Origin: Macrostomum hystrix
Lineage: Eukaryota; Animalia; Platyhelminthes
DNA length: 64,000 nucleotides
Direction of reading: 5' to 3'
Assembly: GCA_950097015.1 (NCBI GenBank)
Contig: CATNEN010000001.1
Coordinates: 4,154,001 to 4,218,000 of the forward strand
The number at the start of each line of letters is the position of its first letter. The stretch's first letter is position 1. This document shows positions 23,901-56,193 of the stretch, in pieces. Both the position numbers and the translations under genes were made by a program. Under the pieces are notes generated by a model, which did no database searches, had not been told where the DNA came from, and was given only the letters and a program-made list of their open reading frames with translations.

Positions 23901-26900
23901 TGAGAACACTATTCAGAATCACGTGACTGAGTCGAGTCAGCTCAAATCTGAAGTCGATAATTGGATGGGCAAGTGCCAGGAGCTGCAAGCCGAACTAAAC
24001 AGTAGTCTGCAAGGTGCAGACGCTCAATTGAATCACCTTAAGGATACAGTTGAAGCAAAGTCTTTCGAGTTAAACGAATGTAGGACCAAAAATCGCGAAG
24101 CAGAAAAGAAGATTGAAACATGCGAAGCTCAGATATCGCAGTTAAAATTAGAATTAGAGACAAAAATAACGGAAGTAGATGAATGGAAAGCAAAATATGA
24201 GGGTGTGACTTCCGAGTTAAAGAGTGTCAACAATTCGCATGCAAGCCAAGTGTCTCAACTGAAATCTGAGTTAGACACGAAGAACCAGGAATCAGAGGAT
24301 TACAAAGCCCAGTTGTCACAGTTGAAGTGTCTGTTTGAGTCGAGCAGCCTTGAAGTGCAAGATTTGACAGTGAAATGCCAAGCTGTGCAGTCTGAGCTAG
24401 ATGAATCAGTTCGACTGCGCAAAGAAGAGGTTGCCCAACTAGAAGCCGATATACACGCGAGAACTCTAGAAGCAAACGATTGGCAGGCGAAATGCCGGGA
24501 GGCTCAATCTCAGCTGGAAAGAAGCCTCCAAGGAGCAGATGTTCAACTGACAGAGCTCAGAGTCGAACTAGACTCCAAGAATAGCGCCTTGGAGGATTGG
24601 ATGGCAAAGTACTCGCAGATTCAATCGGAATTAGAGAATTGTCAAAAAGAGCTTGAGGCCAAAGCAGGAGATGCGGATAGCTGGCAAAGAAAATTCCAGG
24701 AACTTCAATCCGAGTTGGCTAACACTCAGCAGGGATCTGAAGTACAGATGTCTCAGCTAAAATCTGAAATTGAAGCCAAGTCAAACAAAGCTGAAGAGTG
24801 GAAAAACAAGTGTCGCGAGATGCAAACTAAGCTCAAAACCGCTATTCAGTCGCTTAAAAAATTCGAAGCTAAAATTGCCGAACTAGAAAACGACAAAATC
24901 AAGAGTCAGGAGAGTCAAGCCGAGCTCGAGGCCAGTCTCAAATTATTCGAAGCCCAGTTGGCTGAACTGAAATGCAACTTGGAGGCTAGGACTAACGATG
25001 TAGAAGAGTGGAGAGGCAAGTGCCAAGAAGCTCAGGAAGAATTGGACAGAGTTCAACAGAATTCAACTGTCAGAACCTCCGAGTTGAACTCCGAATTAGA
25101 AAGAAGGAACTCAGAGATAGAAGAATTAAGACTAAAGTGTCAGGAAATTCAGTACGAGTTGAATAAAAGCTTGCAGAATCACGAAGCTCAGGTGTGCCAG
25201 TTCAAATCGGAACTAGAAGCCAAGACTAACGAAGTTGATGAGTGGAAAAACAAGTGCCAAGAGCTGCAAGCTGAGCTTGACAGAGGCCTGCAGGGAGCCG
25301 ACGCTCAGATGACTCACATGCGATCGGAGCTTGAAGCCAGGAATTCCGAGCTTGGAGAGTGGAAGGCTAAGTATCAAGAGGCTAGCAGAGATCTACAGTC
25401 CGACGAGGCTCTACTCTCGCAATTAAGATCGGAGCTAGAAACAAAGTCGAGCGAGACTGAAGACTGGCAGGCAAAGTATCAGGACATTCAGTCTCAGCTA
25501 GATGCCGCAATTCATTCCTACGATGGGCAATTATCACAACTCAGGTCTGAAATTGAAGTAAAAGCCTCTGATGTTGAAAACTGGAGGGCCAAGTATCAGG
25601 ATGCTCTGGCGGAGCTGGATCAGAGCCGTCAGTTACACGATGATCAGCTAACCCAGCTCAAGCTGGAATACTCAGCAAAGTCGGCAGAGACTGACGATTT
25701 GAAGGCAGTGCGGCAGCAGCATCAGCAGCATTTGGAGCAACTCGGCAGCGATTTGGCTGCTAGGGAAGTCGAGCTGTCCCAGCTGAGATCTGACTTTGCC
25801 AGCAAAGCATCGGAAACCGAAAGTTTCATGTCTAAATGTCAAGAGCTCGAACAGCAGTTATCTGAGCTTTCTAGCCGCCTAGAAACTAGAGAAATTGAGC
25901 TAGGCCAGGCTAAATCAGAGCTCGAATTCAAAGCTTTGGAATTGCACGAACTACACAGCGCAACCGCGGAACATCAACGTCAACTGGAGCAGTTTGGCAG
26001 CAGTCAGGAAGAGAAAGACTTTTTGATGGCGCAATTGCAATCCGAAGTCGAACGGTTCAAATCAAAATGCGACGAACAAGAACACCAACTGAAACAGTTG
26101 CAATCTAGATTAGAATCTTCCCAAGCCGAATGCCAATTGAAGAGCAGGGAATCGGAAAGCTGGCTAGCCAAGTGTCAGGAGCAGCTGCATCGACTGCAGC
26201 AGGCTGGCGCGGAAGAGGAGACCAGAGACGCCGAGCTGTCTAAGCTTCGCTCTGATTGCGTATCTTTAACAGCCGAGGCGGACAATTGGCGCGCCAAATG
26301 CGAATTGCTTGAACAGGAGCAGGAGTTTCGAATGGAACAGATGGCCGGCGGGCATGAAGCTGTCGAAGCCGAGCTGAGGGCTCAGATTGTCGAACTTACC
26401 GCCGAGAATCGAACTCAAGCCGATGCTATCGATGAGGCGCGTAGAAACCTGGAAGCCGCCGAAGCTGCCGCGGCAGATGCCAATCGTAGAGCATTGCAAA
26501 GATTCACGAAATCTATTAAGGAGTTAGTCGAAGCTCTGGGTTTAAACTATAGTTCGATCGAAAAAGATGAGTCTAATATTTGCGAATTCGCCAATGACGC
26601 AACAGAATTATTAGACGAATCTTCAAAAGCGGCCTCACAGATTAGGCAACAACTAAAGGAGTTAAAGTCTGAACAGGAAACAACGGTTCAGGTAGGTTAA
26701 AAAAATTCGAAGCCGTATTGCATGCATAAACAAGACACACACAGTATTAAATAAGTCTATATTATTTCCCGCTACCCAAACAGTCTCTACAGCGTCGTCT
26801 AGCTAGTTTAGAATCTCAACTGCGCACCAGCCAATCAGAATTGGACTTGGCCAGAGACGAATCAGATTCGGCCGCACTAGAACGCGACCGATTCGCTGCT

Positions 26901-30794: not shown

Positions 30795-33548
30795 TCACAG
30801 AATGCGGCACGGCTGCTGACGGTTACCGCTCGCACTGACATTGAAGGCATCGGCGGCAGCAGCTTCGCAAATCGCTCGAGTCGCCAGTTGCTGCTCCATC
30901 GCCGACCGGACCTCCAGTCGATCCAGCTGGACGGCAAGGCGGTCGCGATGCTGCAATTCTTTGAACAGCTCGCCAGATAATTCCGGCGTCAGACTAGGCG
31001 AAGAAGACATCAGTAGGTGTCGACGAATGCGCCTCTTGAGTGACTCCAATCTTTGCAACTGTTCAACCTCCAGCTGCATGAGGTCCAGCTGATTGGACTG
31101 GTAATGCACCTGCAGTCGTTGCATGAGCAAGCTGTACCACTCGGTTAGCAAGCCAGCACCGCCTAGAGAGAGGCGTGTGACGCCTTTGTTTGCATTCAAA
31201 GCGACTAGACTGCTTAGAGAGTTGCGCAACTCTTTGCGAAGCTGATTGAGACTGCTTCGACGGCAGGCCAGGTCTTGTCGGCGACGTATCAGCAGCTGCA
31301 TCATTGTGGCGTCCACCTCTAGGTCTGAACTGTCTGTGGTATCCCGCTCAGCGTAGGTAACAACAGCAAGCTGAGGACTACTACTGGCGCCAGTAGTCAG
31401 GTGACAACAACGAAGCTGATGAAGAAAGTCTAGCACCGATGTCACATCTGGAGCTGATCCGTTCAGACTTGGCGTCCTGAATGGAGTTCAAAAAACGCGG
31501 CTTGTATTTCCGCACTTTTGAAGAGACCTTCAATCGTGGTTAACAATAGGACTACCAAGCCATTTTGCCGCCCGTTTTTATACCAAAGGGCCCCCTGAAA
31601 CATTTTTTGGCAGCGCCTGAATGCTAACAGTGTTGGGTGGGGACTGATTGATTGACAGACTAGGCGAGGATGTCCAGTGAAATTTGAGAAATTCGCGTCA
31701 GGGTGTCCATTGTGGCCTAGTTCCACCTGTTGTAGCCCTTGAAGGTCCAGCAGTCCGTCTAGATAAAGTTAGGTGACCACCGAAGACGGAGATAATGCAG
31801 GTACAATCGGGTGACATGCTGATAAATTTTGAAGGCCTGGCAAGGCCGCACTGAGGCGCAGTGCTAATTCATGTATATGGGTGTATGTATAAGGCTTATG
31901 GGAAAAATCAGACCCTCGGCCAGAACCATTGAATATCTCGACGGTCTGAAGGGCTGGCGACTTGATTCTTGTTTCAGAAGATGCGCAAAAAAAGTTGGCC
32001 CATGTTCTTGACTTTCGTGTGCCTGCGCTGCTCCGTTCAGGCGCAGCACAAATATAATTTTGATAGGTGAACTCCCGCCTAATTTAGGACCACCATCATA
32101 CGCATATACTGAGCTATTGTTTTACTAACCTGAACACACCCAGTTGTCTAGCGGCTTCAGCGGCCATGGCGTGGCACTGCAGCCAGCCACTGGGCGGTCC
32201 GGCAGCTGCTTTGTCAGCGGCCGCACGCAGATCTATTAAGCCAGGCCAGTGTCGTTGAATGATGGCACAGAAGGCCAGGCCGCTGCTAAATGATGTGCTC
32301 AGATTTTGAACACAGACGCCAGGACAATTCGCTGCGGACTCGCGAGCCCACGCGAACAGCTGATCAATCTCGGACATGTCCAAATCTAATAGGCTAGTCT
32401 GACGTCGAACTGACAATGGCACAGCTGCTGCATCCGAAGATGCTGCTAGACATTTTCTGAGAGACACTAGCGGCATCGCTTGACCGGGCATGGAATAGTA
32501 CAGTGTGAGACTAACTGTGCCCGACAAGATCTGGTTGGTAAATAGAAGGTACAATTAAGCTTAGCATTACAATCCATATGATGATTCTAGAGTGTACATC
32601 TGCTCAGACTTTCTCATTGTCTCATGTCTCTCATAGACGTGAATTGCGCGACAAGCCAGCAAGCTTTCTTGCCTTCGAGGAACACGGATTCGAGCTCAGG
32701 GACTGTCGCGACTTTATCGTCGTCTCTAAATAGTTCACGTGCACCTTTAGTCTGTCAATCACCTCGATAAACAGACAATTCTGTCTGCTTCTCTACCTCT
32801 GCTTTTAAGCCGCCTTCTGATTGGTCCGGCTCTCCCCTTCTCGCCTTTCTCTTACCCCCAGTCGCGCACTCTCTTTTTTCTCGTCAGGGACTTCAATGCC
32901 TGAGTCGGACGTGATATCGCTTCGCCATTTCAACCCCTAATTCTAGCCCACTTTCGGTAGCAGCAGCAAGAAGGCTTTGGGTCGTGAAGTTTACTTCAAA
33001 GAGGACTTCATTACGAAGGCACAGTGTGAGTGTGTGCCAGCGTGCGGTATAACATATGACAGTGTAGTCGCTAGCTATATGCCCAGTCCACTATCGATGC
33101 GCATAGCAACACTCACTTTCTTAGACATGCGCTCAGTTGGCAACAGCATCAGTTGGTACTCTTGAGCATCGGTAAGAGATTTCAAATCAACCGTACACCT
33201 GGCCAACGGCTTGACGCCAGTGGAACCACCAAGCACTGAAGCTAGGGATCTTCGCTCAGTTTTCAACTCTTCTATTGTCACCGTCAGGATCTTCAAAGAG
33301 TCGCCAGTTAACGCAGTCTTGGACTTTGATTTGGAATGAGAAATATCGATGCTGAGCAGCTCCGGACTGCGCCATTCTAAACAGCAGCGACAGGGCAGCG
33401 ATAAACTGGCAAACCAGCTCACCGCTTGGCTGCTGCAGCAGCCGCTACACACCGTGAGGGATACCCGAAGCAATCGACCTGGGTTGAAGCCTTTGACGCA
33501 GTCAACGGAGGCGGATGAGATCTTGGCAGTCAGTTGGCGACCCTCTGC
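30795..33548 (-). CDS. EHBP1-like paralog A: NT-C2 + CH + bMERB + CAAX (CRIL), ~505 aa; start codon absent from the first visible exon
   Basis: Exons 33548-33117 (NT-C2: ...KPLARCTVDLKSL...LLPTERMSKK), 32530-32130 (CH: QLFAWARE...QNLSTSFSSGLAFCAIIQRHWPGLID) and 31476-30795 (CH end PDVTSVLDFLHQLR; bMERB LLTEWYSLLMQR...ELQHRDRLAVQLD; CRIL stop). Intron phases 0 and 2. Confidence 0.85.
31543..32050. mobile_element. TA-TSD MITE family copy (one end truncated) in intron 2 of paralog A
   Basis: TA+ACAATAGGACTACCAAG end; colinear with the reverse complement of 13615-14227. Confidence 0.85.
32590..32930 (-). mobile_element. Degraded SINE family 2 copy interrupted by a solo LTR
   Basis: Head TGGCGAAGCG...GTCCC|TGAGCTCGAATCCG is reconstituted after removing 32704-32886 plus one GGGAC; carries the GAGAAAGTC...CAGATGTACAC motif of family 2. 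Confidence 0.65.
32704..32886 (-). mobile_element. Putative solo LTR (183 bp)
   Basis: TG...CA termini (TGTCGCGA / TCTCGTCA), 5-bp TSD GGGAC on both sides, CCAAT and TTAAAA motifs on the - strand. Confidence 0.65.
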
Positions 33549-33611
33549 CTGAAACAGGTGCGAGATTGATATTTTGCATTGAATTAGCTTAAAATCACTT
33601 GCTATGATAAT

Positions 33612-33960
33612 ATAATTGCATGAGGGCTGCGGGCAATGGTACATCATTTAGTGACACTAGACCCGCAGCCAGCGAGGAGGAAATTCTGTCCATTTCGCTG
33701 ACTCCTGAGCACACACACTCACAGATACTGTACGCAGGCACACGCTCACACAGGTGTGTACATCTGCCCTGACTTTCTCATCGTCAGGCAGTGTACACTC
33801 TCACTGTGCCTTGGAGGTTGGCCCTCAAGGGCGTAAATTGCACGACAAGCCCCAAAGCCTTCTCTCCGTGGCTGCGCCCTAAATGCATGTGGCCTCGCCG
33901 CGGAATCGAGCTCAGGGACCTTGGTGCGAGAGGCAAACGCGTTAAACCGCTTTACCACTC
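33612..33960 (-). mobile_element. tRNA-derived SINE family 2, full length
   Basis: Head TGGTAAAGCGG...GCTCGATTCC, body and 3' hairpin with ATT tail; highly similar to 44560-44930. Confidence 0.88.
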
Positions 33961-34384: not shown

Positions 34385-37300
34385 TCAAAGAAATGTGCAC
34401 CAATACGAGCTGGCATAACAGACGTCAGTGCCAGGTAGACTCGAGGTGTGAAACCAGCCGTCTTCATCTTCGAATCCCAAACTGGTTGGCTGCTGATCGT
34501 ATGGGACCAATGTCGCAGCATTTGAATACAAAGATGGCTGCTGATGCTGCAGCGGCGATAAGCAGAAATGCTGACGCAACTGTCTGAGTAGTTGAAGTAG
34601 GCGATGTCCGCTTTCTGGACTGTCCCTGTCCCAGGCCAGGTCCAGGCGAGGAGCCCTGGAGGTTCAGATGGGTGGTTGAAATTTCGAATTATAAATCAAG
34701 CCAAGAAAACTAAGTAGAAGTTGGAAACTACTTAGCAAAGAATATTCTAATTAACAAACACATCCTAGTAGTAAAGACTTTACCGAAGCAACATAGTTGC
34801 AGCAAAAAAAATGCATAAGAAACTGCATAGCAACGAAGATTCTAGATGAAAAACATCCTAGCAACAAAGATTCCACCTAAGAAACTGCATAGCAACGAAG
34901 ATTCCACTAAAGAAACTGCATAGCAACGAAGATTCTAGATGAAAAACATCCTAGCAACGAAGATTCCACAAAAGAAACTGCCTAGCAACAAAGATTCCAC
35001 CTAAGAAACTGCATAGCAACGAAGATTCCATATTAAAAACAGCCTGGCAACGAAGATTCCTCCGAAGAAACAGCATAGCAACGAAGATTCCACCAAAGAA
35101 ACTGCATAGCAACGAAGATTCCATATTAAAAACAGCCTGACAACGAAGATTCCACCAAAGAAACTGCATAGCAACGAAGATTCTAGATGAAAAACATCCT
35201 AGCAACAAAGATTCCACCTAAGAAACTGCATAGCAACGAAGATTCTAGATGAAAAACATACTAGCAACGAAGATTCCACAAAAGAAACTGCCTAGCAACA
35301 AAGATTCCACCTAAGAAACTGCATAACAACAAAGATTCCACCTAAGAAACTGCACAACAACGAAGATTCCACTAAAGAAACTGCATAGCAACGAAGATTC
35401 TAGATAAAAAACATCCTAGCAACGAAGATTCCACAAAAGAAACTGCCTAGCAACAAAGATTCCACCTAAGAAACTGCATAGCAACGAAGATTCCATATTA
35501 AAAACAACCTGGCAACGAAGATTCCACCGAAGAAACAGCATAGCAACGAAGATTCCACCAAAGAAACTGCATAGCAACGAAGATTCTAGATGAAAAACAT
35601 CCTAGCAACGAAGATTCCACAAAAGAAACTGCCTAGCAACAAAGATTCCACCTAAGAAACTGCATAACAACAAAGATTCCACCTAAGAAACTGCACAACA
35701 ACAAAGATTCCACCTAAGAAACTGCATAACAACAAAGATTCCACCTAAGAAACTGCATAACAACAAAGATTCCACCTAAGAAACTGCACAACAACGAAGA
35801 TTCCACTAAAGAAACTGCATAGCAACGAAGATTCTAGATAAAAAACATCCTAGCAACGAAGATTCCACAAAAGAAACTGCCTAGCAACAAAGATTCCACC
35901 TAAGAAACTGCTGAAGATTCCATATTAAAAACAACCTGGCAACGAAGATTCCACCAAAGAAACAGCATAGCAACGAAGATTCCACCAAAGAAACTGCATA
36001 GCAACGAAGATTCTAGATGAAAAACATCCTAGCAACGAAGATTCCACAAAAGAAACTGCCTAGCAACAAAGATTCCACCTAAGAAACTGCATAACAACAA
36101 AGATTCCACCTAAGAAACTGCACAACAACAAAGATTCCACCTAAGAAACTGCCTAGCAACGAAGATTCAACCTAGGAAACCGCATAGAAACGAAGATTCC
36201 ATATGAAAAACATGCTAGCAACGAGTATTCCACTTAAGAAAGTGCATAGCAACGAAAATCGATTCCAATTTAGTAACACGGAGCAACTAACACGCTGCCC
36301 TGATGCCTGCACCATTCGTCAGAGCAATCTTGAAAAACTATTCGAAAATTCTTCATCAGAGACGGATGCTCAGCCAGCACGTTGAAGTTAACGACACCAG
36401 TCTCGCCGCCGCAGAATCGCCGAATAACCAAGAAAGCGATGTCAAAGTTTGACAGAATCGACTGGGCATCGTCGACTGGAGCTACATCCGGGTGACCGTC
36501 GGAGACAGCGCGCAGCCAGGCCTCCAGACTGTGCGTCAGCAGCGTCTGATTGACGGCTTGCGACTGTCTCGGATTGGGCAGGCGAAGATCGGCGCGAACT
36601 ACCGCGGAATCTGGTTTGCCGCAGTCTTTGGAGTCGACTCCCCGTCTAACCGGGCCCATCGCAATACTGTGGAGGCTAGTGAAGACCCTAGCTGGCGAGA
36701 GCATCTTCAACGGCATCTCCGTAGATCGCCTGCTGCTGCGAGCGTAGATTAGATCGAATTGTAGAGTGACACTGGCCAGCTGGGAACAGGACTGCAGGGC
36801 GATGGGAGAGATAAGTGCGTTGATACTCCGGAACTTGAGACTTTTTAACTCAATGCTACTATACAGATCTGCAGGGGTCGAAGCAACCCAGTTGCCCCTT
36901 CTGACACCTACAGTATCCTGCTTCATATTTCACCGTGTGTCATTCCTTCCCTGTCTCAGCTCTTCCGTGTCTCATCTCTTCATTGTCTCATCTCTCCCGT
37001 GTCTCATCTCTCCCCTGTCTCATCTCTCCCGTGTCTCATCTCTCCCCTGTCTCATCTCTCCCGTGTCTCATCTCTCCCGTGTCTCATCTCTCCCGTGTCT
37101 CATCTCTCCCGTGTCTCATCTCTCCCCTGTCTCATCTCTCCAGTGTCTCATCTCTCCTGTGTCTCATCTCTCCCGTGTCTCATCTCTCCCGTGTCTCATC
37201 TCTCCCGTGTCTCATCTCTCCCGTCTCATCTCTCCCCTGTCTCATCTCTCCCCTGTCTCATCTCTCCCGTGTCTCATCTCTCCCCTGTCTCATCTCTCCC

Positions 37301-38720
37301 CTGTCTCATCTCTCCCGTGTCTCATCTCTCCCCTGTCTCATCTCTCCCGTGTCTCATCTCTCCCCTGTCTCATCTCTCCCCTGTCTCATCTCTCCCCTGT
37401 CTCATCTCTCCCGTGTCTCATCTCTCCCGTGTCTCATCTCTCCTGTGTCTCATCTCTCCCGTGTCTCATCTCTCCCGTGTCTCATCTCTCCCGTGTCTCA
37501 TCTCTCCCCTGTCTCATCTCATCCCTGTCTCATCTCTCCCGTGTCTCATCTCTCCCCTGTCTCATCTCTCCCGTGTCTCATCTCTCCCGTCTCATCTCTC
37601 CCCTGTCTCATCTCTCCCTTGTCTCATCTCTCCCGTGTCTCATCTCTCCCCTGTCTCATCTCTTCGCTGTCTCATCTCTCCCGTGTCTCATCTCTCCCCT
37701 GTCTCATCTCTCCCCTGTCTCATCTCATCCCTGTCTCATCTCTCCCCTGTCTCATCTCTCCCGTGTCTCATCTCTCCCCTGTCTCATCTCTCCCCTGTCT
37801 CATCTCTCCCGTGTCTCATCTCTCCCGTGTCTCATCTCTCCCGTGTCTCATCTCTCCCGTGTCTCATCTCTCCCGTGTCTCATCTCTCCCCTGTCTCATC
37901 TCTCCCCTGTCTCATCTCTCCCCTGTCTCATCTCTCCCGTGTCTCATCTCTCCCCTGTCTCATCTCTCCCGTGTCTCATCTCTCCCCTGTCTCATCTCTC
38001 CCGTGTCTCATCTCTCCCCTGTCTCATCTCTCCCCTGTCTCATCTCTCCCCTGTCTCATCTCTCCCGTGCCTCAAGAATAATCAGTCCAACAAGAACTTG
38101 CTCGGCTAGACTTCAGAGCAGGAAGTTGCAAAGTCACCGGCATTAGCCGCCAGTCCCCAGCGTTGCATGTTTCAGATTCATTGTCGACTTGTTTTGCTAT
38201 GTTGAAATCTCCACGAGCCAAGTTTGCCGAACTAGAACCGACTTTTTTTTCAGTAGAATTTACGACAGACACTGTCCACGCTTTGTCCGCATATTTTGGC
38301 GACTGCGCTTCTGTAAAGCAAAGAACAAATTATTTGCTTATTTCTATGTTCCGTACTCTCTTATCTATCTTTAGTTGTGTTCTCTCTAGTTAGTTTAGAC
38401 ATTTTATACTCGTATTTGTTTCGGTGCACTTATTGATTGTTCTAACCATTTCGCTTTGCAGACGCATCAGGAACCAGTCGAAGCTTAGTAGACTTGGCAA
38501 TCGTCACTGGTCCCGTGGCGTCGTTTTTAAAAAACTCTATCGGTTGGCCATAGACAGCGTGAGCTTGAGCGTGCCGCTTATAGATGATTGAGGCCGGCCG
38601 CAGTTCTTGCTGCAATCCACCACGCGACAATGTCACACGTAGGCTAGCTATTTGAGTACGTGGAGTCCAACCGTTTAGGGTCACCGAGTGCAAGTCTAAT
38701 TTGAAATCGAATCTCGTCAT
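34385..38720 (-). CDS. EHBP1-like paralog B: NT-C2 + divergent CH + acidic tail + CAAX (CTFL), ~417 aa
   Basis: Exons 38720-38447, 38310-38102 (needs a GC donor), 36791-36292 and 34655-34385 join in frame. NT-C2: MTRFDFKLDLHSVTL...KAWTVSVV...LARGDFNIA. CH-like: SLEAWLRAVSDGHPDV...LLQLLRQLRQHF. Intron positions match paralogs A, C and D. Confidence 0.72.
34815..36255. repeat. Minisatellite, ~30 bp unit with higher-order variants (AAGAAACTGCATAGCAACGAAGATTCCACC)
   Basis: Fills the last intron of paralog B. Confidence 0.96.
36965..38070. repeat. 16 bp satellite (GTGTCTCATCTCTCCC)
   Basis: Direct; same family at 42890 and (inverted) 54215. Confidence 0.98.
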
Positions 38721-39353
38721 GAAGATAATCTGGAAGGGTCAAAAAAATTATAGACCAACTTTGCTAAAAAAAATCGATGACAAAAAATGGCGCACAGCCT
38801 TTTCAATTCAAACTCGGAATTATGTGGCAAATGGCGAAATCTGGGAAGTAAGAAAATGCTTAGAATTTAAATTCGACATTGAGTAGTCGTACTCACTTTT
38901 GTTGCCAATTTTATTGAGATCAAGTAGTTGTTCTAGTGTTTGTGGATAAATCTAAAAATATTGACTATAGAGAATTGGTAAAGGCCTTATTGAAATGACC
39001 AATACTAAAACTATCCAATCTATAGCGAACGATTGTACACAACAGTAATGAAATAACGAAGTCATTATGCCAAACGCTGGTAAAACAGGAAAACTTTTTA
39101 TTTTAATTGATAAAAAACAAATCACACTAAAACGCGACATGTACGCTTTCAGATCAAAACAAACAAGTCAAATGCTCAGTTGAATCTTGAGAAAAAAATG
39201 CAAAATCTGATTATAAACACTAAATGAAAATGCCAAACTACAAACCGGAAGACACAGCTTAGGCATTTTATTATAACTTGTACTAAATAGAGAACAACGA
39301 AAAATGTCAAATAGATTGCGGAGAAGATAAAATAAATCCCTGGAGCGTTAGTC

Positions 39354-39926
39354 TCAGACTTGATTGCCATCTTGTTGGTGCTGCACAATGGAGTGCACTT
39401 TGAGATTGCTTTTCCGACTAAAGCGCATGCCGCAGACGCTGCATTTGAAGGGCTTCTCACCTGAATGCACCATCAAGTGACTATTGAGATTGTAACGCTT
39501 ACGAAAATTCTTCTCGCACAGTTGGCACTGAAAAGGCCTGGAGCAGCTTGATCGATTAGATAGCTTAGATTCAATCAACCCGGTAATAGGACTGAGCCTG
39601 CGCTTCTTCGGCTTATTATGAACAACTTGCATGTGCTTCTTCAAACTATCAGCGTGAGAGAATCGATTTCTGCATTTGACACACGGTAGCGGCTTCTGTT
39701 GGCAAAAAAAGCGTTGATGCCTGTAAAAATCGCTGTACAAAAAACTCTTTTTGCATTGCTGGCATTGGCGATGACGCCTCTTTGCAGGGCGACGGCTTCG
39801 GCGGAGGCACAGCACAATCGCTTTCCTGGCTTCATCGCAGCCAAGACAATGAGACTCCAAGTGGTTCCAGTACGCGTCTCTCTGGTATCTTTGAAACCGC
39901 ATCAGGCACATCGGACACATTGACAT
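39354..39926 (-). CDS. C2H2 zinc-finger protein, 190 aa, single coding exon
   Basis: Fingers [72 protein letters not shown] plus two atypical N-terminal fingers; basic NLS-like KPKKRR. Confidence 0.9.
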
Positions 39927-40478
39927 GTCTGGACTAGTCTAAACCTGGAACCAATGAGCAAACATTGTATATTAGTAGGATAAAATTGAGTCCGAGTTCT
40001 TAAGGCATCTTACTAGATCTTCGATAGATTATAAAGATTCGCACAAAAGCGAATTAACCACATTTCATTAACCACATTTACCATGTTGCACTAAAATTGT
40101 ACACCAGTTATAAATTCTTTTTAGTCAAGTTTCTATACAAATATAAATTAAATAGAAAAAGGCAAACACAGATTTGCTAAAAAATAAAGAAAAACTATAT
40201 TTTTTCTCATAAAAAAGGTTTTGAGCAAACAACAGACCAATCACTACAATTATAAAAGTGAGTAAAGAAAACTGTTTTAAAATCTATAAAATATATTTAA
40301 AAAGCTATAGTGGAATCTTGTAGTGTTGCATCTATGTAGAAGAGTGAAACAATCGAATTAAAATATCTGACAAAGTCAATGGTCTCTTTCCAAAGTAATT
40401 TAATGTGCGCCTTTGAACGCACAGAAAACGTTTGTCAATGTCTCGTTCTATTTACAGAATGAAATGAAAATTTCGACT

Positions 40479-42512
40479 TCATAGAATACAACAGGCCGAT
40501 TGAGCCTGATTGGACTCATTGTCGCCGCCATTTTCCGTCTCTTGAACAACGGAATCATTGTCCGCAGCAGTCGATGTGGACTCCGGAAGCATCATCTGAC
40601 GGAGCTGCTCAGCGTCAACTACTTCCCAGTCGAACTCCCAGTCCGCAGCGTCTGCGGTATCAATGCCGACTGCAGACGACGCGACAAAGAAGTCCCGCAG
40701 ACGACGCAGCAGCTCAGAATTTTCAATGCGCCTCTGAGGTAAATTCAGCAACGAGGAGTCGTCGACTATAGCGCTGGGCCTGGCGACAACAGTGACGATG
40801 CTATATTTTAACTTGTCTATATTAATTAAGTTGGAGCAGAAAATAGCAGAAAAGCAAGAAGCTAGGGGGAGACTGGCAGAGCGGTCTAACACAGGCACAG
40901 TGAGAGTGTACACTGCCTGACGATGAGAAAGTCCGGGCAGATGTACACACTAGTGTGCGTGTGTGCTCTGGAATTGCCTCCTCGCTGGCTGCGGGTCTAT
41001 TGTCACCAAATGTGCCATTGCCTTTGCTACCAAGCAGCAAAGTTTATTATCATTACGGGTGGCAGCTTTCATCGTTTCCTACCAATCGATTCCAAGGACT
41101 CCAGCCGCCTGTCTTGCCATGGACATTCTGACACAATCGCCACCAGCTCCTATGACAGCTCGCAAGTCGATAAGGTCCGGCCTGTGCCTGTGCAGGACAG
41201 CGCAGAAAACTACGCCGTCATTGAAGTTGGAAGCTGTCAAATCGGTGTCGCAAATCTGAGCATAGCTTCTCAGAGCACCTCGCGTCCAGGATACCAGACT
41301 ATCAGACAAGTCCCGGTTTTCAAAGCGATTCGAGCCCTCTCGGAAAAGCCGAGACAACTGACCTGTTGATTGACTACCAGACCAGGACCTCGACAGCAGC
41401 ATCTGCAACTGACGACTGTCTTTCGCATTCAATTTGGCAACGACTGTGAGGCTCTGATGTGTTTGCAATTGTCCAATAGACACAGATGCTGATGAAACGG
41501 TAACGGCGCTAAAATCTCTTGAGGATGGTGACTCCACGACTGTTTGCTGATTTGCTGGCAAAACCTCGGTTTTCGAAAATTTTAGAACTTTCATTTCTTC
41601 CACACATGCGGAGTCATTCACAGTAGGGTTTGAAAGATTCGGCCTGTCAGCTTCCGCCAGAGACTGAGCACTCTGCAATGCTTCTGGGAGAATAGGACTG
41701 TCAGCTGCAGACAGTTCCGCCAGTGACTGAGCACTCTGCGATGCTTCTGGGAGAATAGGACTGCCAGTTGCAGAAGGCGCCATTAATAGTTCAGCAGCCA
41801 AAGTAGAGGCTCGAACACAATTCTTCAAGCCATCAGTAATATCAGTAGACACTTCGTTGAGGCATTGGAAGTTCGCTGTTTGCAAAGGCTGGATAAAGGC
41901 TTGTTCTGACTTGCACAAGCGAATGGAATGAATGGTTAGTGTGACACTGGCAGCAGTAATCTGCGGGTGAATAGGCGATTATTTAAACAAATGAAGTAGC
42001 TGTTTAAAATAAAAATAAATTAAAAAATATTTGTTACTAAGTCTAAAACTGACCAGATTATGTTTAACCGGTACTAAACTGACAGTGAATTGCTCTGATA
42101 GTCTCGTCTGACTGCAATCTGTGCTGATAAACTCGGCTAAATTGATTCGGCAGCTAGCAAGCTCCAGACGGTTGCTAGGCAACAATGACTTGGCCTTTCT
42201 AGTCTCAACAATTAGAAGCCAGATCTTGTCACAAAATACAGGCTCGTTGGGTTTTAATCTAGCATCGTCGGATGGAAACTTGAATTTAGCCGTGAAGCCA
42301 GCAGTCTGCGGTGTTAGCCACTGAACGCAGCGAATGCTAGGATTGGCTGACTGAGCCGACCAATCAGAGAGCTGCGTGCCAGCGCGACGCTTGCCTAATG
42401 TTCCCGATTTGACAAGCGCAGCGGCCAACTGACTCGGTTGAAAGCCAGGCCGACAGTCCACGGACACGCGGTGGAAGCTGACCGTTAGGCGATGCTTCAC
42501 AACCGACCTCGG
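40479..42512 (-). CDS. EHBP1-like paralog C: NT-C2 + linker + CH + acidic LIR-like tail + CAAX (CCIL), ~546 aa; start codon absent from the first visible exon
   Basis: Exons 42512-42054 (HRLTVSFHRVSVDCRPGFQPSQL...DKIWLLIVE...LASCRINLAEF), 41960-41083 (CH: SLVSWTR...NFNDGVVFCAVLHRHRPDLID) and 40779-40479. Intron phases 0 and 2. Confidence 0.85.
40872..41052 (+). mobile_element. SINE family 2, internally deleted copy
   Basis: TGGCAGAGCGG head fused to the 3' part (CTGACGATGAGAAAGTC, GCCTCCTCGCTGGCTGCGGG). Confidence 0.8.
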
Positions 42513-42889
42513 CTGCAAGTTTAACAGTGTTAGATCTGATTTTATTTAGCCAGTGATTTAGAAACAATCGACAATGAAACTCTCTTTAACTCGAAACAGA
42601 TAATAAAATAAAGCTAAACCACAGTTCTGAAAGAATGATTTTGCGTTTATAAAAAACCAACTAGACTTTTTTCGCGGTAAAAACTTCACAATTTCTGGAG
42701 TATCCGACTGAATAAAGAGTAAAGTATAAAGCTGTAAACTTTTGAGAAACTTATTTTTACAATTACAAAACGCTTAAGAAAGTAATATGCATGAGTGAGC
42801 GAAACAACATTTAGGAATCTAGTCCAGCTGTTATGAAAAATATTCAGATAGACATCTGTTTGCGTAAAAAATAGCGTGAAAATCTAACC

Positions 42890-43832
42890 AGTGTCTCAAC
42901 TCTCCCGTGTCTCATCTCTCCCGTGTCTCATCTCTCCCGTGTCTCATCTGTCCCGTGTCTCATCTCTCCCGTGTCTCAACTCTCCTGTGTCTCATCTCTC
43001 CCGTGTCTCATCTCTCCCGTGTCTCATCTCTCCCGTGTCTCATCTCTCCCGTGTCTCATCTCTCCCGTGTCTCATCTCTCCCGTGTCTCATCTCTCCTGT
43101 GTCTCATCTCTCCCGTGTCTCATCTCTCCCGTGTCTCATCTCTCCTGTGTCTCATCTCTCCCGTGTCTCATCTCTCCCGTGTCTCATCTCTCCCGTGTCT
43201 CATCTCTCCCGTGTCTCATCTCTCCCGTGTCTCATCTCTCCCGTGTCTCATCTCTCCCGTGTCTCATCTCTCCCGTGTCTCATCTCTCCCGTGTCTCATC
43301 TCTCCCGTGTCTCATCTCTCCCGTGTCTCATCTCTCCCGTGTCTCATCTCTCCCGTGTCTCATCTCTCCTGTGTCTCATCTCTCCCGTGTCTCATCTCTC
43401 CCGTGTCTCATCTCTCCCGTGTCTCATCTCTCCCGTGTCTCAACTCTCCTGTCTCATCTCTCCCGTGTCTCATCTCTCCCGTGTCTCATCTCTCCTGTGT
43501 CTTATCTCTCCCGTGTCTCATCTCTCCCGTGTCTCATCTCTCCCGTGTCTCATCTCTCCCGTGTCTCATCTCTCCCGTGTCTCATCTCTCCCGTGTCTCA
43601 TCTCTCCCGTGTCTCATCTCTCCCGTGTCTCATCTCTCCCGTGTCTCATCTCTCCCGTGTCTCATCTCTCCCGTGTCTCATCTCTCCCGTGTCTCATCTC
43701 TCCTGTGTCTTATCTCTCCCGTGTCTCATCTCTCCCGTGTCTCATCTCTCCCGTGTCTCATCTCTCCCGTGTCTCAACTCTCCTGTCTCATCTCTCCTGT
43801 CTCAACTCTCCTGTCTCTCAACTCTCCCGTGT
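42890..43832. repeat. 16 bp satellite (GTGTCTCATCTCTCCC)
   Basis: Direct; lies between paralogs D and C. Confidence 0.98.
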
Positions 43833-43908
43833 TTCATCCATCCCGTATCTCATACCTCCATAGTCAGTCTTTGTCTTTGTTGTATTAGGGTTCATTGAGT
43901 AAAATAAG

Positions 43909-46723
43909 TCATAAAATGGTGCATGACGCCCAATGAAGTTTATTGAGAAGGCTTGGCGACTCCACCGTGACCATCACCAAGCACTGTTCATCAACTAGCT
44001 CTTCATTCACCATCACCCAGTCGTCTAGTGCAACGAGCGGCCTTGGTGGCACCCGGCGACCGAAGCGTTCTCGCAGTTGGTGCAGAAACGCCGCTATCAG
44101 TCTCTGACTAGGGATTCGATGCAGCACCAGGGCTGACGCATCTGGAGTCCTAGGGACATTAAAAATAAATGGCTTTATCACTGCAGAGGAGACACTCAAT
44201 TACCAAGGACCACTAGGAGTAGGACGGGAAACTACGTTTCTTAGAAAAAAATATCACTTTCACTGGCTTTCACTTTTATTAGATTTCAATGATGACAGCT
44301 TTTGATTGGAAGCAGATATAAAGCTGTTCTTTTGATAAAGCTTGCCTAACGTGTTGCTCTGTAACAATGCTATACAGTTTTGTACATGGCAATTTGTTTT
44401 CATACTATCTTCTTTACTTATAAACATCCGATTTCACTGACTATTTTTTGCAGTTATTTTAATAGCGATTAATTACAGCGTATACAGGGGGGGGGCAACT
44501 GTGCCAGATGACTTCGGCAGGTGCCAATACCATTACTATTTACTAACTCACTAATGTTGAGGGTCGGTGGCAGAGCGGTTAACGCGTTTGCCTCTCGCAC
44601 CACGGCCCCTAAGTTCGATTCCACGGCGAGGCCACATTCATTTGGGGCGCAGACGCGAAGAGAAGGTTTGGGGGCTTGTCGTGCAATTTACGCCCTTGTG
44701 GGCCAACCTCCAAGGCACAGCAAGAGAGTGTACCACTGCCTGACGATGAGAAAGTCAGGGCAGACGTACACACCTGTGTGAGCGTGTGCCTGCGTACAGT
44801 ATCTGTGTGCGTGTGTGCTCAGGAGTCAGCGAAATGGACAGAATTGCCTCCTCGCTGGCTGCGGGTATAGTGTCACTAAATGATGTACCATTGCCCGCAG
44901 CCCTCCTGCAATTATTATTTTTTATTATTCTATTGAAGCTAGGAAGAAATAGCTAATAGCGATTAATATAATGTTTAATTAGTAATTAATTGCAAGAGGA
45001 ACGCAAAAATAAGGTCCAGCAAATTTTACTAGTCAATAGTGTAATAAATCTCAGACTTATGAAAGGTTATTTAGTAAAAAAACCGTAGAAAGATTAAATT
45101 GTATTGTAGAAAACTTTATAATCCGTTTTCAATCAAAAGCTGTCACGATTTAAATCTTTTAAAAAGTCTAATTTTCCTATCTCCGTATTGTATTTTTCTC
45201 GCGAAAACAAGTCGTTGATTTTTTTTCTAAGAAACGTAGTCTCCTGTCCTTCTACTAGTGGTCTTGTCAATCACATGAGAAGATAACTTATCCCAAACTG
45301 AACAATTTCCTCATTTTAAACTAGCCTACTCACATATCAACGCCAAGCTCTCTGGCAGCGTTAAACGCTAAGTTATTATTCTCGCGCAAGTTGTTAGTTA
45401 AACAGTCGAAATCGATCAGACGCGGCGAGAATCTATTAATGATTGCGCAGAATGCAAGACCGTTGCGAAAAGACGTGTGACGATTAGCGATTTTCACGTA
45501 TCGATAGCCTTCGGTGCATTCGCGACTCCAGGCCAGAAGGCTGTCAGTAAAGTCCGCGTCGAGAGAGACCTCGAGACCAACAACTGACGCGTCAGGTGTG
45601 CAAGGACTAAGTGCGGATGCTGAAGTCAGTGTCGATGACTCATCGGGTGAACAAGGACTATGCGCCGATGACTCATCCAATGTACTATTAGCTAGACCTT
45701 CTGTTGATAACTCGGGAAACGAAAGGTCATCAACAAGATGAGTTGGCGTATTTATAGCGGTGGCACAGCCAGGCATAGGCGCCTCTGGCATTGGCGAGCA
45801 GATAGGATAGATAAGTAGGGATAAACTGACGGAAGCCACCTATCAAAGAGCGATGTTGAATTTTGTCGTTTGATTTATTGGAAAAATCTTTCAAAGTTTG
45901 AAATTTGAAACCAGTAGCAAAGTGGTCTAAAGCGTTTGCCTCTCGAGCCGAGGTCCCTGAGCTCGATTCCGCGGCGAGGCCACATTCATTTGGGGCGCAG
46001 CCGCGGAGAGAAGGCTTGGGGGCTTGATAGCCAAGCGCCAAGGGACAGTGAAAGTGTGCAATGCATATAGACTGCCTGACGACGAGAACGCCAAGGCAGA
46101 TGTACACACCTGTGTGCGTGTGTTCTCAGGAGTCAGCGAAATAGGCAGAATTGCCTCCTCGCTGGCTGCAGGTCTCGTGTCACTAATTGGTATGCGATTG
46201 TCCGCAGCCCTTCTGCAATTACGAGTATTAATATTATTATTATTCTAACCTTCTTCGACCTGGAACGCAGCGGCAGCTCAGTCAGAAACTCTGGTTGAGC
46301 CGAGCCTGGCTTCAATAATCTTGCCTTGGACACCAGCTGAGCTAGTCGAACTGTACGGCTGGCGATTCGCTTACAGCCGGCATCGGCTAGACACTCGCAG
46401 GCGACAAATTTCCAATCCTCTGCGACGCCAGCTGAGAAGGTGAAGTCAAAAACGTCGCTAACTGATGCGGCGTCAATGCAACAGACTCTTGTACACGCTG
46501 ATGTCGCACTCGACAACCAACAGCAGCTGCGAGGCTGGGTGCGGTGACGCCAGTGTTTAATGTCAAGTCGTTCAGATCTCAATAGACGACTGATGCGGCC
46601 CACACGATCGTCAGCCGCAGTGGCTGCGGCAAACACCTGTCCTAAGCAACGACTGCTCGAATGATTGCACTCGATTGTCAAACTGGCAAATTTGATAATC
46701 AACTGCCGCTGATTGTGGGCCAT
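43909..46723 (-). CDS. EHBP1-like paralog D: NT-C2 + CH + LIR-like tail + CAAX (CTIL), ~406 aa
   Basis: Exons 46723-46250 (MAHNQRQLIIKFASLTIEC...DWKFVACE...IASRTVRLAQL...LPLRSRSKK), 45839-45334 (CH: SLLAWSRECTEGYRYVKIANRHTSFRNGLAFCAIINRFSPRLIDF...NNNLAFNAARELGV) and 44149-43909. Intron phases 0 and 2. Confidence 0.88.
44202..45268. mobile_element. Putative TIR element (~55 bp imperfect TIRs) with a nested SINE, in intron 2 of paralog D
   Basis: GACCACTAGGAGTAGGACGGGAAACTACGTTTCTTAGAAAAAAA at 44208 is the reverse complement of TTTTTTTCTAAGAAACGTAGTCTCCTGTCCTTCTACTAGTGGTC ending ~45263. Confidence 0.65.
44560..44930 (+). mobile_element. tRNA-derived SINE family 2, full length
   Basis: A box TGGCAGAGCGG, B box AGTTCGATTCC, 3' hairpin, (ATT)n tail. 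Confidence 0.88.
45915..46245 (+). mobile_element. SINE family 2 copy in intron 1 of paralog D
   Basis: Colinear with 44560-44930; ATT tail ends a few nt from the splice donor. Confidence 0.85.
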
Positions 46724-53992: not shown

Positions 53993-54194
53993 CTTGTACA
54001 ATTAAGCTAGGGTAATTATTGCTGAAAGATTTTAAATGCGACATTAAATACTAAGCAGCCAATCTACTAGTTGAGTTGATTGTCGATACGAAACCTACCA
54101 ACTAACTAACCCAGGGTTCGGATAACTTATTAGCTGGCGGGCCAAGAGAGAACCTAAAAGACGACAGCGGGCCGCATTGACTGGAAATATAAGA

Positions 54195-55052
54195 TAGGGG
54201 AGAGATGACATGGGAAAAATAAGACAAGGGAGAGATGAGACACAGGAGAGATGAGACACTGGAGAGATGAGACACAAGATAGATAAGACACTGGAGAGAT
54301 AAAACACTGGGGAGATGAGACACGGGAGAGATGAGACACAAGAGAGATGAGACACTGGAGAGATGAGACACAAGAGATAAGATACTGGAGAGATAAAACA
54401 CTGGAGAGATGAGACACTAAGAGATGAGACAAAGAGATGAGACACAGGAGAGATGAGACACAAGAGAGATAAGACACTGGAGAGATGAGACACTGGACAG
54501 ATAAGACACGGGAGAGATGAGACACTGGAGAGATGAGACACAAGAGATATATGACACTGGAGAGATAAAACACTGGAGAGATGAGACACGGGAGAGATAA
54601 GACACTGGAGAGATGAGACACTGGACAGATAAGACACGGGAGAGATGAGACACAGGAGAGATGAGACACAAGAGATATATGACACTGGAGAGACAAAACA
54701 CTGGAGAGATGAGACACGGGAGAGATAAGACACTGGAGAGATGAGACACTGGAGAGATGAGACACGGGAGAGATGAGACACGGGAGAGATGAGACACAGG
54801 AGAGATGAGACACAGGAGAGATGAGACACTGGAGAGATGAGACACTGGAGAGATGAGACACTGGAGAGATAAGACACTGGAGAGATGAGACACGGGAGAG
54901 ATAAGACGCGGGAGAGATGAGACACTGGAGAGATGAGACACTGGAGAGATGAGACACAAGAGAGATAAGACACTGGAGAGATGAGACACGGGAGAGATGA
55001 GACACTGGAGAGATGAGACACTGGGGAGATGAGACACGGGAGAGATAAAACA
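54195..55052. repeat. 16 bp satellite, inverted orientation (GAGAGATGAGACACTG)
   Basis: Direct; more diverged than the 36965 and 42890 arrays. Confidence 0.96.
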
Positions 55053-56193
55053 CTCGGTTAGTTAAGTGGATTGTCGATAAGAAAGCTACCAACTAACTGA
55101 GCAATCAACTGGTTGAGGGAATGGTTGATGTGAAAACCAACTTGCACACCAACTAGCACCTGCTCAGACACTTGACGCTACATAATGGATCCTACTTAAA
55201 GGAAGTTATTTTAAAGAAGAAATGTTAGAACTTCGTAACTTTTATTGCAGAAAAACGACATCAAATAGTTTTTACAAAAGAAACTAAAACAATTTAGAGG
55301 TACGAAATCGAGTCAGCAACTTGTTTGCGTTATTGCTTGAAATGAAACTGACAAGAAACTAATTTGTGTAAATTGAAAAGCAAAACAAAACAGAAATCGT
55401 TGAACTCGAGGTAAAAACACGTGTAAAAATCAATATATATCTCGATAATCGCACGAATTTATCAAAAAAAAATTAAACAGAATTGCTAGCAAAAAATCTT
55501 TTAAAAAAATCCGGAATACGATATCAATTCTTCTAATGTATTGCCAAACGGAAATTACAAGAGTTGTAGAAAAAATATCACAATAATCGACAAAAGGCAC
55601 TTGTAAATCATTATTCAAATTATGGAAGCATTGTACCTGTACTGTTTAAAAACTGAAAATATATTTTAATTTTAAAAAGAACACAATATTTGATGGAATG
55701 GTACATTATTTGCAATGAAATTTGCTAAACTGAAAAACGTTTTCAACTATTTCATAATTATATTTGCGCATCGACGCATTACAATTCTATAAAAGTTCAC
55801 AAGTTCGATTCCTACAGATGGAACTGAAAATCAACTTCAAATCCAATTGAACACTAGAGAGTTCATAGTCTAATAGTCGAAGGTCTACAATAAACTGACA
55901 TTTACTCGCTTTTGCTAGCTAATAAGGAATTCAACATTTAAGATTATTTACTGAAATGTACTCCATTTCTTTAAGCCCCTGTGAAGATAGCAATGCTCTG
56001 CTGAGGCAATTTACTGCAAGGCTAAATTACAAGTTTCTAATGAACACTTTGAAGTCAGAATTCTTGATAGTTGAAATTAAGCATTTAATTATCTTATCAG
56101 CTAAAATGGTCACCGTTAAATCGAAGAGTCATGACCTATGGCCTCTGACAACAGCCCAATGTGTAACTTAGGATAATTTCAATTTGAGTAAAT

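Follow-up and report, generated by a model that had tools for sequence, protein, structure and literature searches.

A conserved bMERB-less EHBP1 subfamily in Macrostomum with a predicted prenyl anchor and a candidate LIR in its tail

Four intact genes derived from EHBP1 are arranged head to tail, as a minus-strand tandem array, in a 64,000-nucleotide window of contig 1 of the flatworm Macrostomum hystrix (the window being the whole stretch of DNA that was analysed). Two of them, here called C and D, represent a real, conserved subfamily in which an NT-C2-type domain and an EHBP1-like CH domain are followed by a short tail with a predicted prenylation site (CaaX box), and from which the bMERB domain is missing; as far as has been seen, the subfamily is restricted to Macrostomum. 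The tails of C and D have one acidic tryptophan block in common, and this block is conserved in a second species, Macrostomum lignano. Our verdict is that the subfamily carries a functional short motif in this block. The best single reading, to which we assign a probability of about 0.4, is that it is predicted to be a working LC3-interacting region (LIR) for proteins of the Atg8/GABARAP family.

Genes C and D and the conserved features of their tails

The array runs in the order D, C, a C2H2 zinc-finger open reading frame (ORF), B and A (Table 1). The exons of all four genes were derived from reading frames and splice sites, and the gene ends were predicted from the sequence; searches, alignments and fold predictions for M. 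hystrix refer to single exons, and full-length analyses refer to M. lignano database proteins. All nine introns of the array have GT-AG borders, and each coding piece is an open frame. Throughout the array the second exon holds the last strand of the NT-C2 domain, a linker and about three-quarters of the CH domain; a phase-2 intron inside the CH domain is common to A, B, C, D and canonical EHBP1. In A and D, as in the canonical gene, the NT-C2-like first part closes with the residues SKK, followed by a phase-0 donor. Canonical M. hystrix EHBP1 is located on another contig, has NT-C2, CH and bMERB domains recognised by Pfam, and ends in CSLQ. Because the exon layout and the intron inside the CH domain match those of canonical EHBP1, the array genes are regarded as EHBP1 derivatives.

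In A, C and D the CH domain is recognised by Pfam; the scores of a custom CH profile for these copies are 51, 35 and 85 bits, respectively. AlphaFold2 predicts both folded domains of the M. lignano D orthologue with confidence (predicted local distance difference test, pLDDT, >90). Residues 1-177 of this model form a beta-sandwich that matched solved C2 domains at an E-value of 4.5e-5, and its CH domain is closest to that of human EHBP1 (6ZSH; template modelling score 0.90 on the target). For A and B the NT-C2 assignment follows from alignment and pattern similarity only, which is not significant by itself.

A first-pass annotation of this DNA had stated that only A possesses a bMERB domain, and this was borne out: A has a diverged three-helix domain, to which we return below, and none was found in B, C or D. 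Pfam returned no match for any of the tails, or for gene B, at E-values up to 10. The stretches that follow the CH domain in B, C and D (59, 68 and 50 residues, compared with 201 in A) are too short to accommodate a bMERB domain, and alignment of the C and D tails with bMERB profiles by hhalign was not significant (E 0.27). Because the bMERB domain is absent, C and D are classed as EHBP1-derived rather than as proteins of full EHBP1 architecture.

In each of the four genes a single exon, the last, which is entered through the phase-2 intron, encodes the final CH helix together with the tail and the CaaX box, and a misassigned last exon is unlikely for this reason. There is only a very slight chance, in our estimate, that the gene models are wrong in the sense that C and D transcripts use other 3′ exons or run into the next gene, such that the tail is not the true protein end. 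This explanation could draw on the M. lignano model P0155, which breaks off the D orthologue after CLV and continues, by a splice, into exon 1 of the A orthologue, and on the head-to-tail, same-strand arrangement of genes that may belong to a trans-spliced operon. However, the NCBI M. lignano models P0003, P0151, P0154 and P0153 all stop at the same CaaX box, and a CaaX box at every terminus in both species would be senseless unless translated as a C-terminus. Moreover, neither the spacer between D and C nor the DNA downstream of C contains a minus-strand ORF that codes for helices.

P0155 (UniRef A0A1I8HVX7) includes the whole of the A orthologue behind the shortened D part; it may be a prediction artefact, or else a read-through or cis-spliced transcript. 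In M. hystrix, the CLV codons hold a possible GT donor (TTG/GTGATG, near 43975).

Orthologues were found with a library-wide HMMER search using the CH exon of D, then word-index searches and then a cluster look-up. The HMMER search led to a 400-residue M. lignano protein, the word-index searches added another copy of D and two orthologues of C, and the cluster look-up yielded the fused model with the A orthologue; the closest database proteins to the array genes are all from this species. D corresponds to P0003/P0151 and C to P0153/P0152, the latter two having been found with exon 2 of C. The C and D orthologues bear consecutive accession numbers on two contigs, from which they are predicted to be neighbours in M. 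lignano too. A literature search on the M. lignano gene identifiers found no paper naming them, and a protein atlas search returned generic CH clusters only.

Loss of the motif in orthologues had been named beforehand as grounds for giving up the proposal of a LIR-like tail. Both the motif and the CaaX box are kept in P0153 (C) and in P0003/P0151 (D). The motif of D reads DDWVMV in M. hystrix and DDWVIL in M. lignano, and that of C reads FDWEVV and LDWEFV. The block around the C motif is identical to P0153 at 15 of 19 positions, both tryptophans included, and is the best-kept part of the tail; the SACC at the end is also kept, and the rest of the C tail has diverged with insertions and deletions. 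Four islands are kept in the D tail, namely GR..PPR beside the CH domain, DDWV, CLV...E and W-x-S-C-x-x-L. Apart from the CaaX box, D-W-x-x-[VL]-[DN]-[AE]-[EG] is the sole place where the four C and D tails of the two species can be aligned, in agreement with the first-pass description of the remaining tail as unalignable between copies, and whole-protein identity is only 29-57%. The tryptophan block predates the C/D duplication, which is itself older than the species split, and this is the main reason to treat the block as functional.

The proteins of the array end in CRIL (A), CTFL (B), CCIL (C) and CTIL (D), and the M. lignano orthologues end in CAVL, CCVM and CSLL. Among the best 150 CH matches, 58 end in CxxQ or CxxS and just two in leucine, namely the D orthologue of M. 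lignano and a short model that is unrelated. CaaX boxes with a terminal leucine are substrates of geranylgeranyltransferase I, and those with a terminal glutamine, serine or methionine are substrates of farnesyltransferase; from this rule, the array is predicted to have mostly shifted to geranylgeranylation. The geranylgeranylation signal claimed in the first pass is present in all four M. hystrix genes, but the M. lignano C orthologue ends in CCVM, which is of the farnesyl type, and the prenyl type is thus not fixed in the subfamily.

A 359-residue insect model (P0017, from a Logan contig; its cluster includes an EHBP1-like protein of Rhagoletis zephyria) has an EHBP1-type CH domain, the sequence NPFDSD and a CYHL end, without a bMERB domain. 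Either the model is truncated or it may stand for a short CH-CaaX isoform of independent origin.

Candidate partners of the tryptophan block

The xLIR pattern, taken from the iLIR paper (PMC5119064), fits C, D and both M. lignano orthologues (four of four), and in each whole protein the block is the sole xLIR match. The same scoring gives no match in B, which has no LIR core, and the LIR-like motif initially proposed for three paralogues stands for two of them. The GABARAP interaction motif (GIM), [W/F]-[V/I]-x-V (PMC5538626), fits M. hystrix D (W-V-M-V). The W-V-I-L of M. lignano D ends in L, and C has E at position X1 (W-E-V-V, and W-E-F-V in M. lignano); none of these three is a strict fit. 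Compared with verified LIRs, D resembles those of ULK1 (TDDFVMV), JMY (ESDWVAV) and PLEKHM1 (EDEWVNV), and C resembles that of STBD1 (HEEWEMV) (PMC5538626). The M. hystrix genome encodes both LC3-type and GABARAP-type Atg8 genes. A role of EHBP1 in autophagy has been reported, as part of a Rab10-EHBP1-EHD2 lipophagy complex, and the literature search found no description of a LIR in EHBP1. In human EHBP1, the bMERB domain and the CaaX box are enough for endosome targeting, and the CaaX box is indispensable (PMC7442826).

If the block is a LIR, the tail of C and D would act as a two-part membrane address. In canonical EHBP1 the combination of bMERB domain and CaaX box reads Rab8/10-positive endosomes; in C and D the combination of prenyl anchor and tryptophan motif would instead read membranes that carry lipidated members of the Atg8 family, and D would favour those of the GABARAP type. 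Docking would be LIR-like, pocket HP1 taking the tryptophan and pocket HP2 the valine or leucine. Through the NT-C2 and CH domains, Atg8 membranes would then be linked to F-actin and to membranes containing phosphoinositides or phosphatidylserine, and, with the bMERB domain gone, the CH domain would be free of Rab-gated autoinhibition.

Several observations weigh against this reading. At a chance rate of 1.5e-3 per position (PMC5119064), about 0.6-0.8 xLIR matches are expected per protein of the size of C or D. Composition-preserving shuffles of the tails produce an xLIR match in 5.5% (C) and 7% (D) of cases, and most xLIR matches in a proteome are non-functional. The conservation of both tryptophans in the DWExDWE of C exceeds what a LIR core needs; in D, the conservation of further islands (CLV... 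and W-x-S-C) indicates that the tail does more than carry one motif. B has lost the hydrophobic +3 position of the motif. The conservation comparison covers two species, M. hystrix and M. lignano. In the AlphaFold2 model of the D orthologue, tail residues 341-391, motif included, have a pLDDT <50 and no secondary structure; this predicted disorder suits a short linear motif but is weak evidence because the alignment is very shallow at the tail columns. Finally, Atg8 binding by the C and D tails is a sequence-based candidate, and the ends of the C and D transcripts in M. hystrix are predictions.

A complex prediction that paired an LC3-like protein (L002:1501-1851, minus strand) with the D tail (window positions 43912-44061, minus strand) scored 0.23, the mark being 0.34, and gives no verdict either way. 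The motif is raised above chance by its conservation in the orthologues.

The same conservation bears on an explanation in which the array consists of fast-evolving, lineage-specific duplicates, perhaps heading to loss, to judge by B, with the block kept for structural or membrane-proximal reasons or through limited divergence, and with a coincidental likeness to a LIR. We consider this unlikely. It would be in keeping with the extreme divergence of the paralogues (NT-C2 exons 14-24% identical, B undetectable by BLAST or hidden Markov models), with the expectation of about one chance xLIR match per protein of this size and with the number of species compared. It does not fit the retention of the block in two paralogues that split before the species did, nor its position in tails that are otherwise unalignable and interrupted by indels; frames, splice sites and CaaX boxes are, moreover, intact in all copies.

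It is possible, though we regard it as doubtful, that the acidic tryptophan block is a real motif for another partner and that C and D are prenyl-anchored transport or actin adaptors with no link to autophagy. Motif classes of this kind are the W-acidic motifs bound by kinesin light chain and the DDW-type motifs of Arp2/3 ligands, and the ears of clathrin adaptors are a further candidate partner. The two conserved copies of [A/F/L]-D-W-E in C fit the W-acidic pattern in both species, the retention of both tryptophans is more than a LIR core requires, and D has DDW in both species. However, D has W-V rather than W-[D/E], and the W-acidic pattern fails there, even though its block can be aligned with that of C. 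Neither the W-acidic nor the DDW pattern is common to the two genes; what C and D have in common in both species is W-x-x-[V/L] followed by D or N, which is the LIR signature. None of the motifs NPF, DPF, FxDxF and WxxF occurs in the C or D tails. A W-acidic motif for kinesin light chain was ruled out as a shared explanation for C and D on account of the W-V in D.

The block could also be a leftover of bMERB helix 2 (M-x-x-W-F-x-x-V-N) that still folds onto the CH domain as a minimal intramolecular regulator. In human EHBP1, the helix-2 residues M1116, W1119, F1120, V1123 and N1124 contact the CH domain's C-terminal helix and autoinhibit actin binding, and the substitutions W1119A and F1120A weaken binding (PMC7442826). 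The corresponding segment reads LLTQWFQLVN in canonical Macrostomum EHBP1 and LLTEWYSLL or LLADWYSLL in paralogue A; the L-D-D-W-V-M-V-N of D likewise has aliphatic residues at W-3 and W+3, and A, which has already lost the long linker, resembles an intermediate. The residues on the CH side tell against a retained contact. Mutation of D532, L534 or T538 in the human CH domain abolishes or cripples bMERB binding (PMC7442826), and these positions, mapped by means of the PSDMVLLA landmark and the consensus, are all kept in the canonical Macrostomum gene but read S, R/A and A in D, and Q, R and S in C. In the alignment of the C and D tails with bMERB (not significant, as given above) the tryptophan paired with another of the bMERB tryptophans. 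The AlphaFold2 model shows no packing of the tail onto the CH domain, and M. lignano D has a glycine and an indel just past the motif, arguing against a helix. Because the essential CH residues are replaced in both genes, a retained autoinhibitory contact is unlikely, and we hold the regulator explanation as a whole to be distinctly improbable.

What is left of the idea of a bMERB helix 2 relic is that the motif may have originated in this way, the resemblance being suggestive and not significant. If such an origin is combined with the LIR reading, then upon loss of the bMERB domain the most conserved part of helix 2, its CH-binding patch [D/E]-W-Phi-x-[L/V], would have left its helix and been reused as a GABARAP-type LIR beside a geranylgeranyl anchor, with membrane reading switched from prenylated Rab to lipidated Atg8. 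As a full scenario this seems an improbable course of events.

Genes A and B and the surroundings of the array

The bMERB-like domain of A is real but diverged, and its Rab binding is putative. Pfam missed it in the A tail; hhalign against canonical bMERB sequences gave an E-value of ~1e-3 over 83 colinear columns that cover helices 2-3. AlphaFold2 predicts three long helices with a pLDDT of ~90, and bMERB structures are the top Foldseek matches of this model, though their E-values (6e-3 and above) are weak; the predicted fold is not fully independent, since canonical sequences were in its alignment. The A tail is 50% identical to that of its M. lignano orthologue. In the evolutionary scheme considered here, A would be the intermediate that still has bMERB.

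Gene B would be a decaying or strongly diverged copy in which the motif has been lost. No CH domain is detectable in B (no Pfam match; CH profile hmmsearch score -0.2), BLAST against all paralogues gave no significant similarity (E >= 0.006), and the NT-C2 signal is not significant. Its placement is based on array position, exon layout, patterns recognised by eye and the CaaX box. The residues WFHT in its tail fail every LIR pattern that was tried. A homologue search with the CH-like ORF of B came back blank, with no B orthologue, and says little because the search was length-limited.

The motif peptides quoted by the first-pass annotation, and the CaaX boxes, were all recovered on the minus strand inside the terminal ORFs; the coordinates given there are those of the motif cores, and the longer strings run 3-9 nucleotides further. 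The features of the array are collected in Table 1.

Table 1. Features of the EHBP1-derived array (positions in the window)
Gene	Feature	Position	Strand	Remarks
D	Exon 1, NT-C2-like	46250-46723	-	ATG start; donor after SKK
D	Exon 2	45336-45839	-	Last NT-C2 strand, linker, first three-quarters of CH; Pfam CH E 7.5e-14; donor GTGAGT
D	Last exon	43909-44148	-	Last CH helix, 50-residue tail, stop; phase-2 acceptor TAG/G
D	Motif DDWVMV	44008-44025	-	xLIR/GIM type
D	Second conserved island CLVMVTVE	43960-43983	-	
D	CaaX box CTIL	43912-43923	-	
C	Exon 1, NT-C2	42054-42512	-	Pfam NT-C2 weak, E 0.054; M. lignano P0152 carries PF10358
C	Exon 2	41085-41960	-	Last NT-C2 strand, low-complexity linker of ~220 residues, most of CH; Pfam CH E 6.2e-7
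C	Last exon	40479-40778	-	Last CH helix, 68-residue tail, stop
C	Conserved block ADWEFDWEVVDAEQLRQMM	40590-40646	-	Contains xLIR match FDWEVV at 40617-40634
C	CaaX box CCIL	40482-40493	-	
Zinc-finger ORF	Intronless C2H2 ORF, at least 3 zinc fingers	39357-39938	-	Between C and B; Pfam E 1e-14
B	NT-C2-like region, two exons	38448-38720 and 38099-38308 (overall 38099-38720)	-	Extra 136-nucleotide GT-AG intron between
B	CH-like exon, degenerate	36315-36866	-	Recognisable by eye only
B	Last exon	34385-34654	-	CH-like last helix, 59-residue tail
B	EDEDGWFHT	34445-34471	-	No LIR core
B	CaaX box CTFL	34388-34399	-	
A	Exon 1, NT-C2-like	33117-33548	-	Starts directly after AG acceptor, in frame with spliced-leader AUG
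A	Exon 2	32132-32530	-	Last NT-C2 strand, linker, most of CH; Pfam CH E 3.4e-8
A	Last exon	30795-31475	-	Last CH helix, bMERB-like domain, CaaX box
A	Three long helices, diverged bMERB-like	30831-31349	-	
A	LLTEWYSLL	31125-31151	-	
A	CaaX box CRIL	30798-30809	-	

No ATG is encoded at the start of A or C; the first exon of each begins right after an AG (at window positions 33549 and 42513), in frame with the AUG that the spliced leader would supply. In the fused M. lignano model P0155, the A part is joined at the same residue at which exon 1 of A starts. The spliced leader of M. lignano ends in ...TTGCATG (PMC8629364), and arrays identical to this leader were found in the M. hystrix genome. An intronless LC3-like gene on another contig (L002, near 1851) also lacks an ATG and starts after an AG acceptor in frame with the spliced-leader AUG. 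The start codon of A, C and the LC3-like gene may be donated by trans-splicing, and the same-strand array may form an operon.

The exact spliced-leader tandem arrays are located on contigs C15, C17 and C42 of the M. hystrix genome (G000), with a spacing of ~11.7 kb. A second, very large array (C39:12667892-12741070) has a spacing of ~927 nucleotides and carries a leader variant with three mismatches (…CTCTCTTTTTTGCATGGT). Single leader copies are also scattered through the genome; the bases that follow them are not GT, and these copies may derive from trans-spliced mRNAs by retroposition.

Repeats lie within the introns and spacers of the array. A 16-nucleotide minisatellite (unit ~GTGTCTCATCTCTCCC, 60-70 copies, 93-95% matches) occupies 36933-38074, in an intron of B, and 42891-43853, between D and C; it also occurs near 54095-55092, where it was seen only as the same repeat-encoded ORF peptides. 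A different array of 47 copies of a 31-nucleotide unit (34816-36256) fills the last intron of B. Copies of an interspersed element lie at 33598-33958, 40825-41043, 44472-44952 and 45930-46244, in both orientations, within introns and spacers of the array, and yield the recurring translated strings ...PAASEEAI... and ...CTSALTFSSSGS... Elsewhere in the window, positions 22033-26700 of the plus strand hold an uninterrupted ORF of 1555 codons for a golgin-like coiled-coil protein, which contains ~14 near-identical tandem units of ~31 residues each (…EDWKTKCQEFENTIQNHVTESSQLKSEV…).

Relation to known systems and significance

The closest described relatives are EHBP1 and EHBP1L1, effectors of the Rab8 family with NT-C2, CH and bMERB domains and a CaaX box. 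C and D are like them in the NT-C2-type domain, the EHBP1-like CH domain with its intron, and the CaaX box. They differ in that B, C and D have no bMERB domain and hence neither a recognisable Rab8/10 site nor bMERB-CH autoinhibition, and in that C and D lack the long linker and the NPF motif. Their CaaX box ends in leucine (methionine in one orthologue) rather than in the glutamine or serine of 58 canonical relatives, and an acidic W-x-x-[V/L] block lies 30-50 residues ahead of the prenyl cysteine. In agreement with the first-pass annotation, no described protein with the domain combination of C and D was found in the literature.

With regard to GIM-type LIRs (ULK1, ATG13, JMY, PLEKHM1, KBTBD6/7), the LDDWVMVNE of D fits, acidic flanks included, and is nearly a hybrid of ULK1 TDDFVMV and JMY ESDWVAV (PMC5538626). 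Those LIRs have been verified experimentally, whereas the motifs of C and D are known from sequence alone. JMY, an actin nucleation factor that is recruited to autophagosomes by its LIR, is an actin-linked protein with a W-V-x-V LIR and offers a working analogy for the coupling of Atg8 membranes to actin. It is unrelated to C and D: JMY has WH2 and CA elements and no lipid anchor, while in C and D one CH domain is combined with a C2-type domain and a predicted prenyl anchor. The receptors BNIP3/NIX, FUNDC1 and FKBP8 combine a transmembrane or tail anchor with a cytosolic LIR. C and D would follow the same logic of a permanent anchor plus a LIR in a disordered segment; the anchor of the receptors is a transmembrane helix on the cargo organelle, whereas C and D would be anchored by the prenyl group of a CaaX box. 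The literature search found no description of a LIR receptor with a CaaX anchor.

If the motif binds Atg8, C and D would be the first CaaX-anchored Atg8 adaptors that we have found described, tying autophagic membranes to actin and to phosphoinositide membranes. A membrane-actin scaffold would then have been re-addressed from Rab8/10 membranes to Atg8 membranes by exchanging a domain of 150 residues for a motif of 6-10 residues. Such a case would be tractable, as M. lignano supports RNA interference and transgenesis and shows responses to starvation and regeneration. If the motif is not a LIR, C and D would still constitute a conserved bMERB-less EHBP1 subfamily, probably constitutively open and with a shifted prenyl type, and would bear on the question of how CH domains can bind actin without Rab gating.

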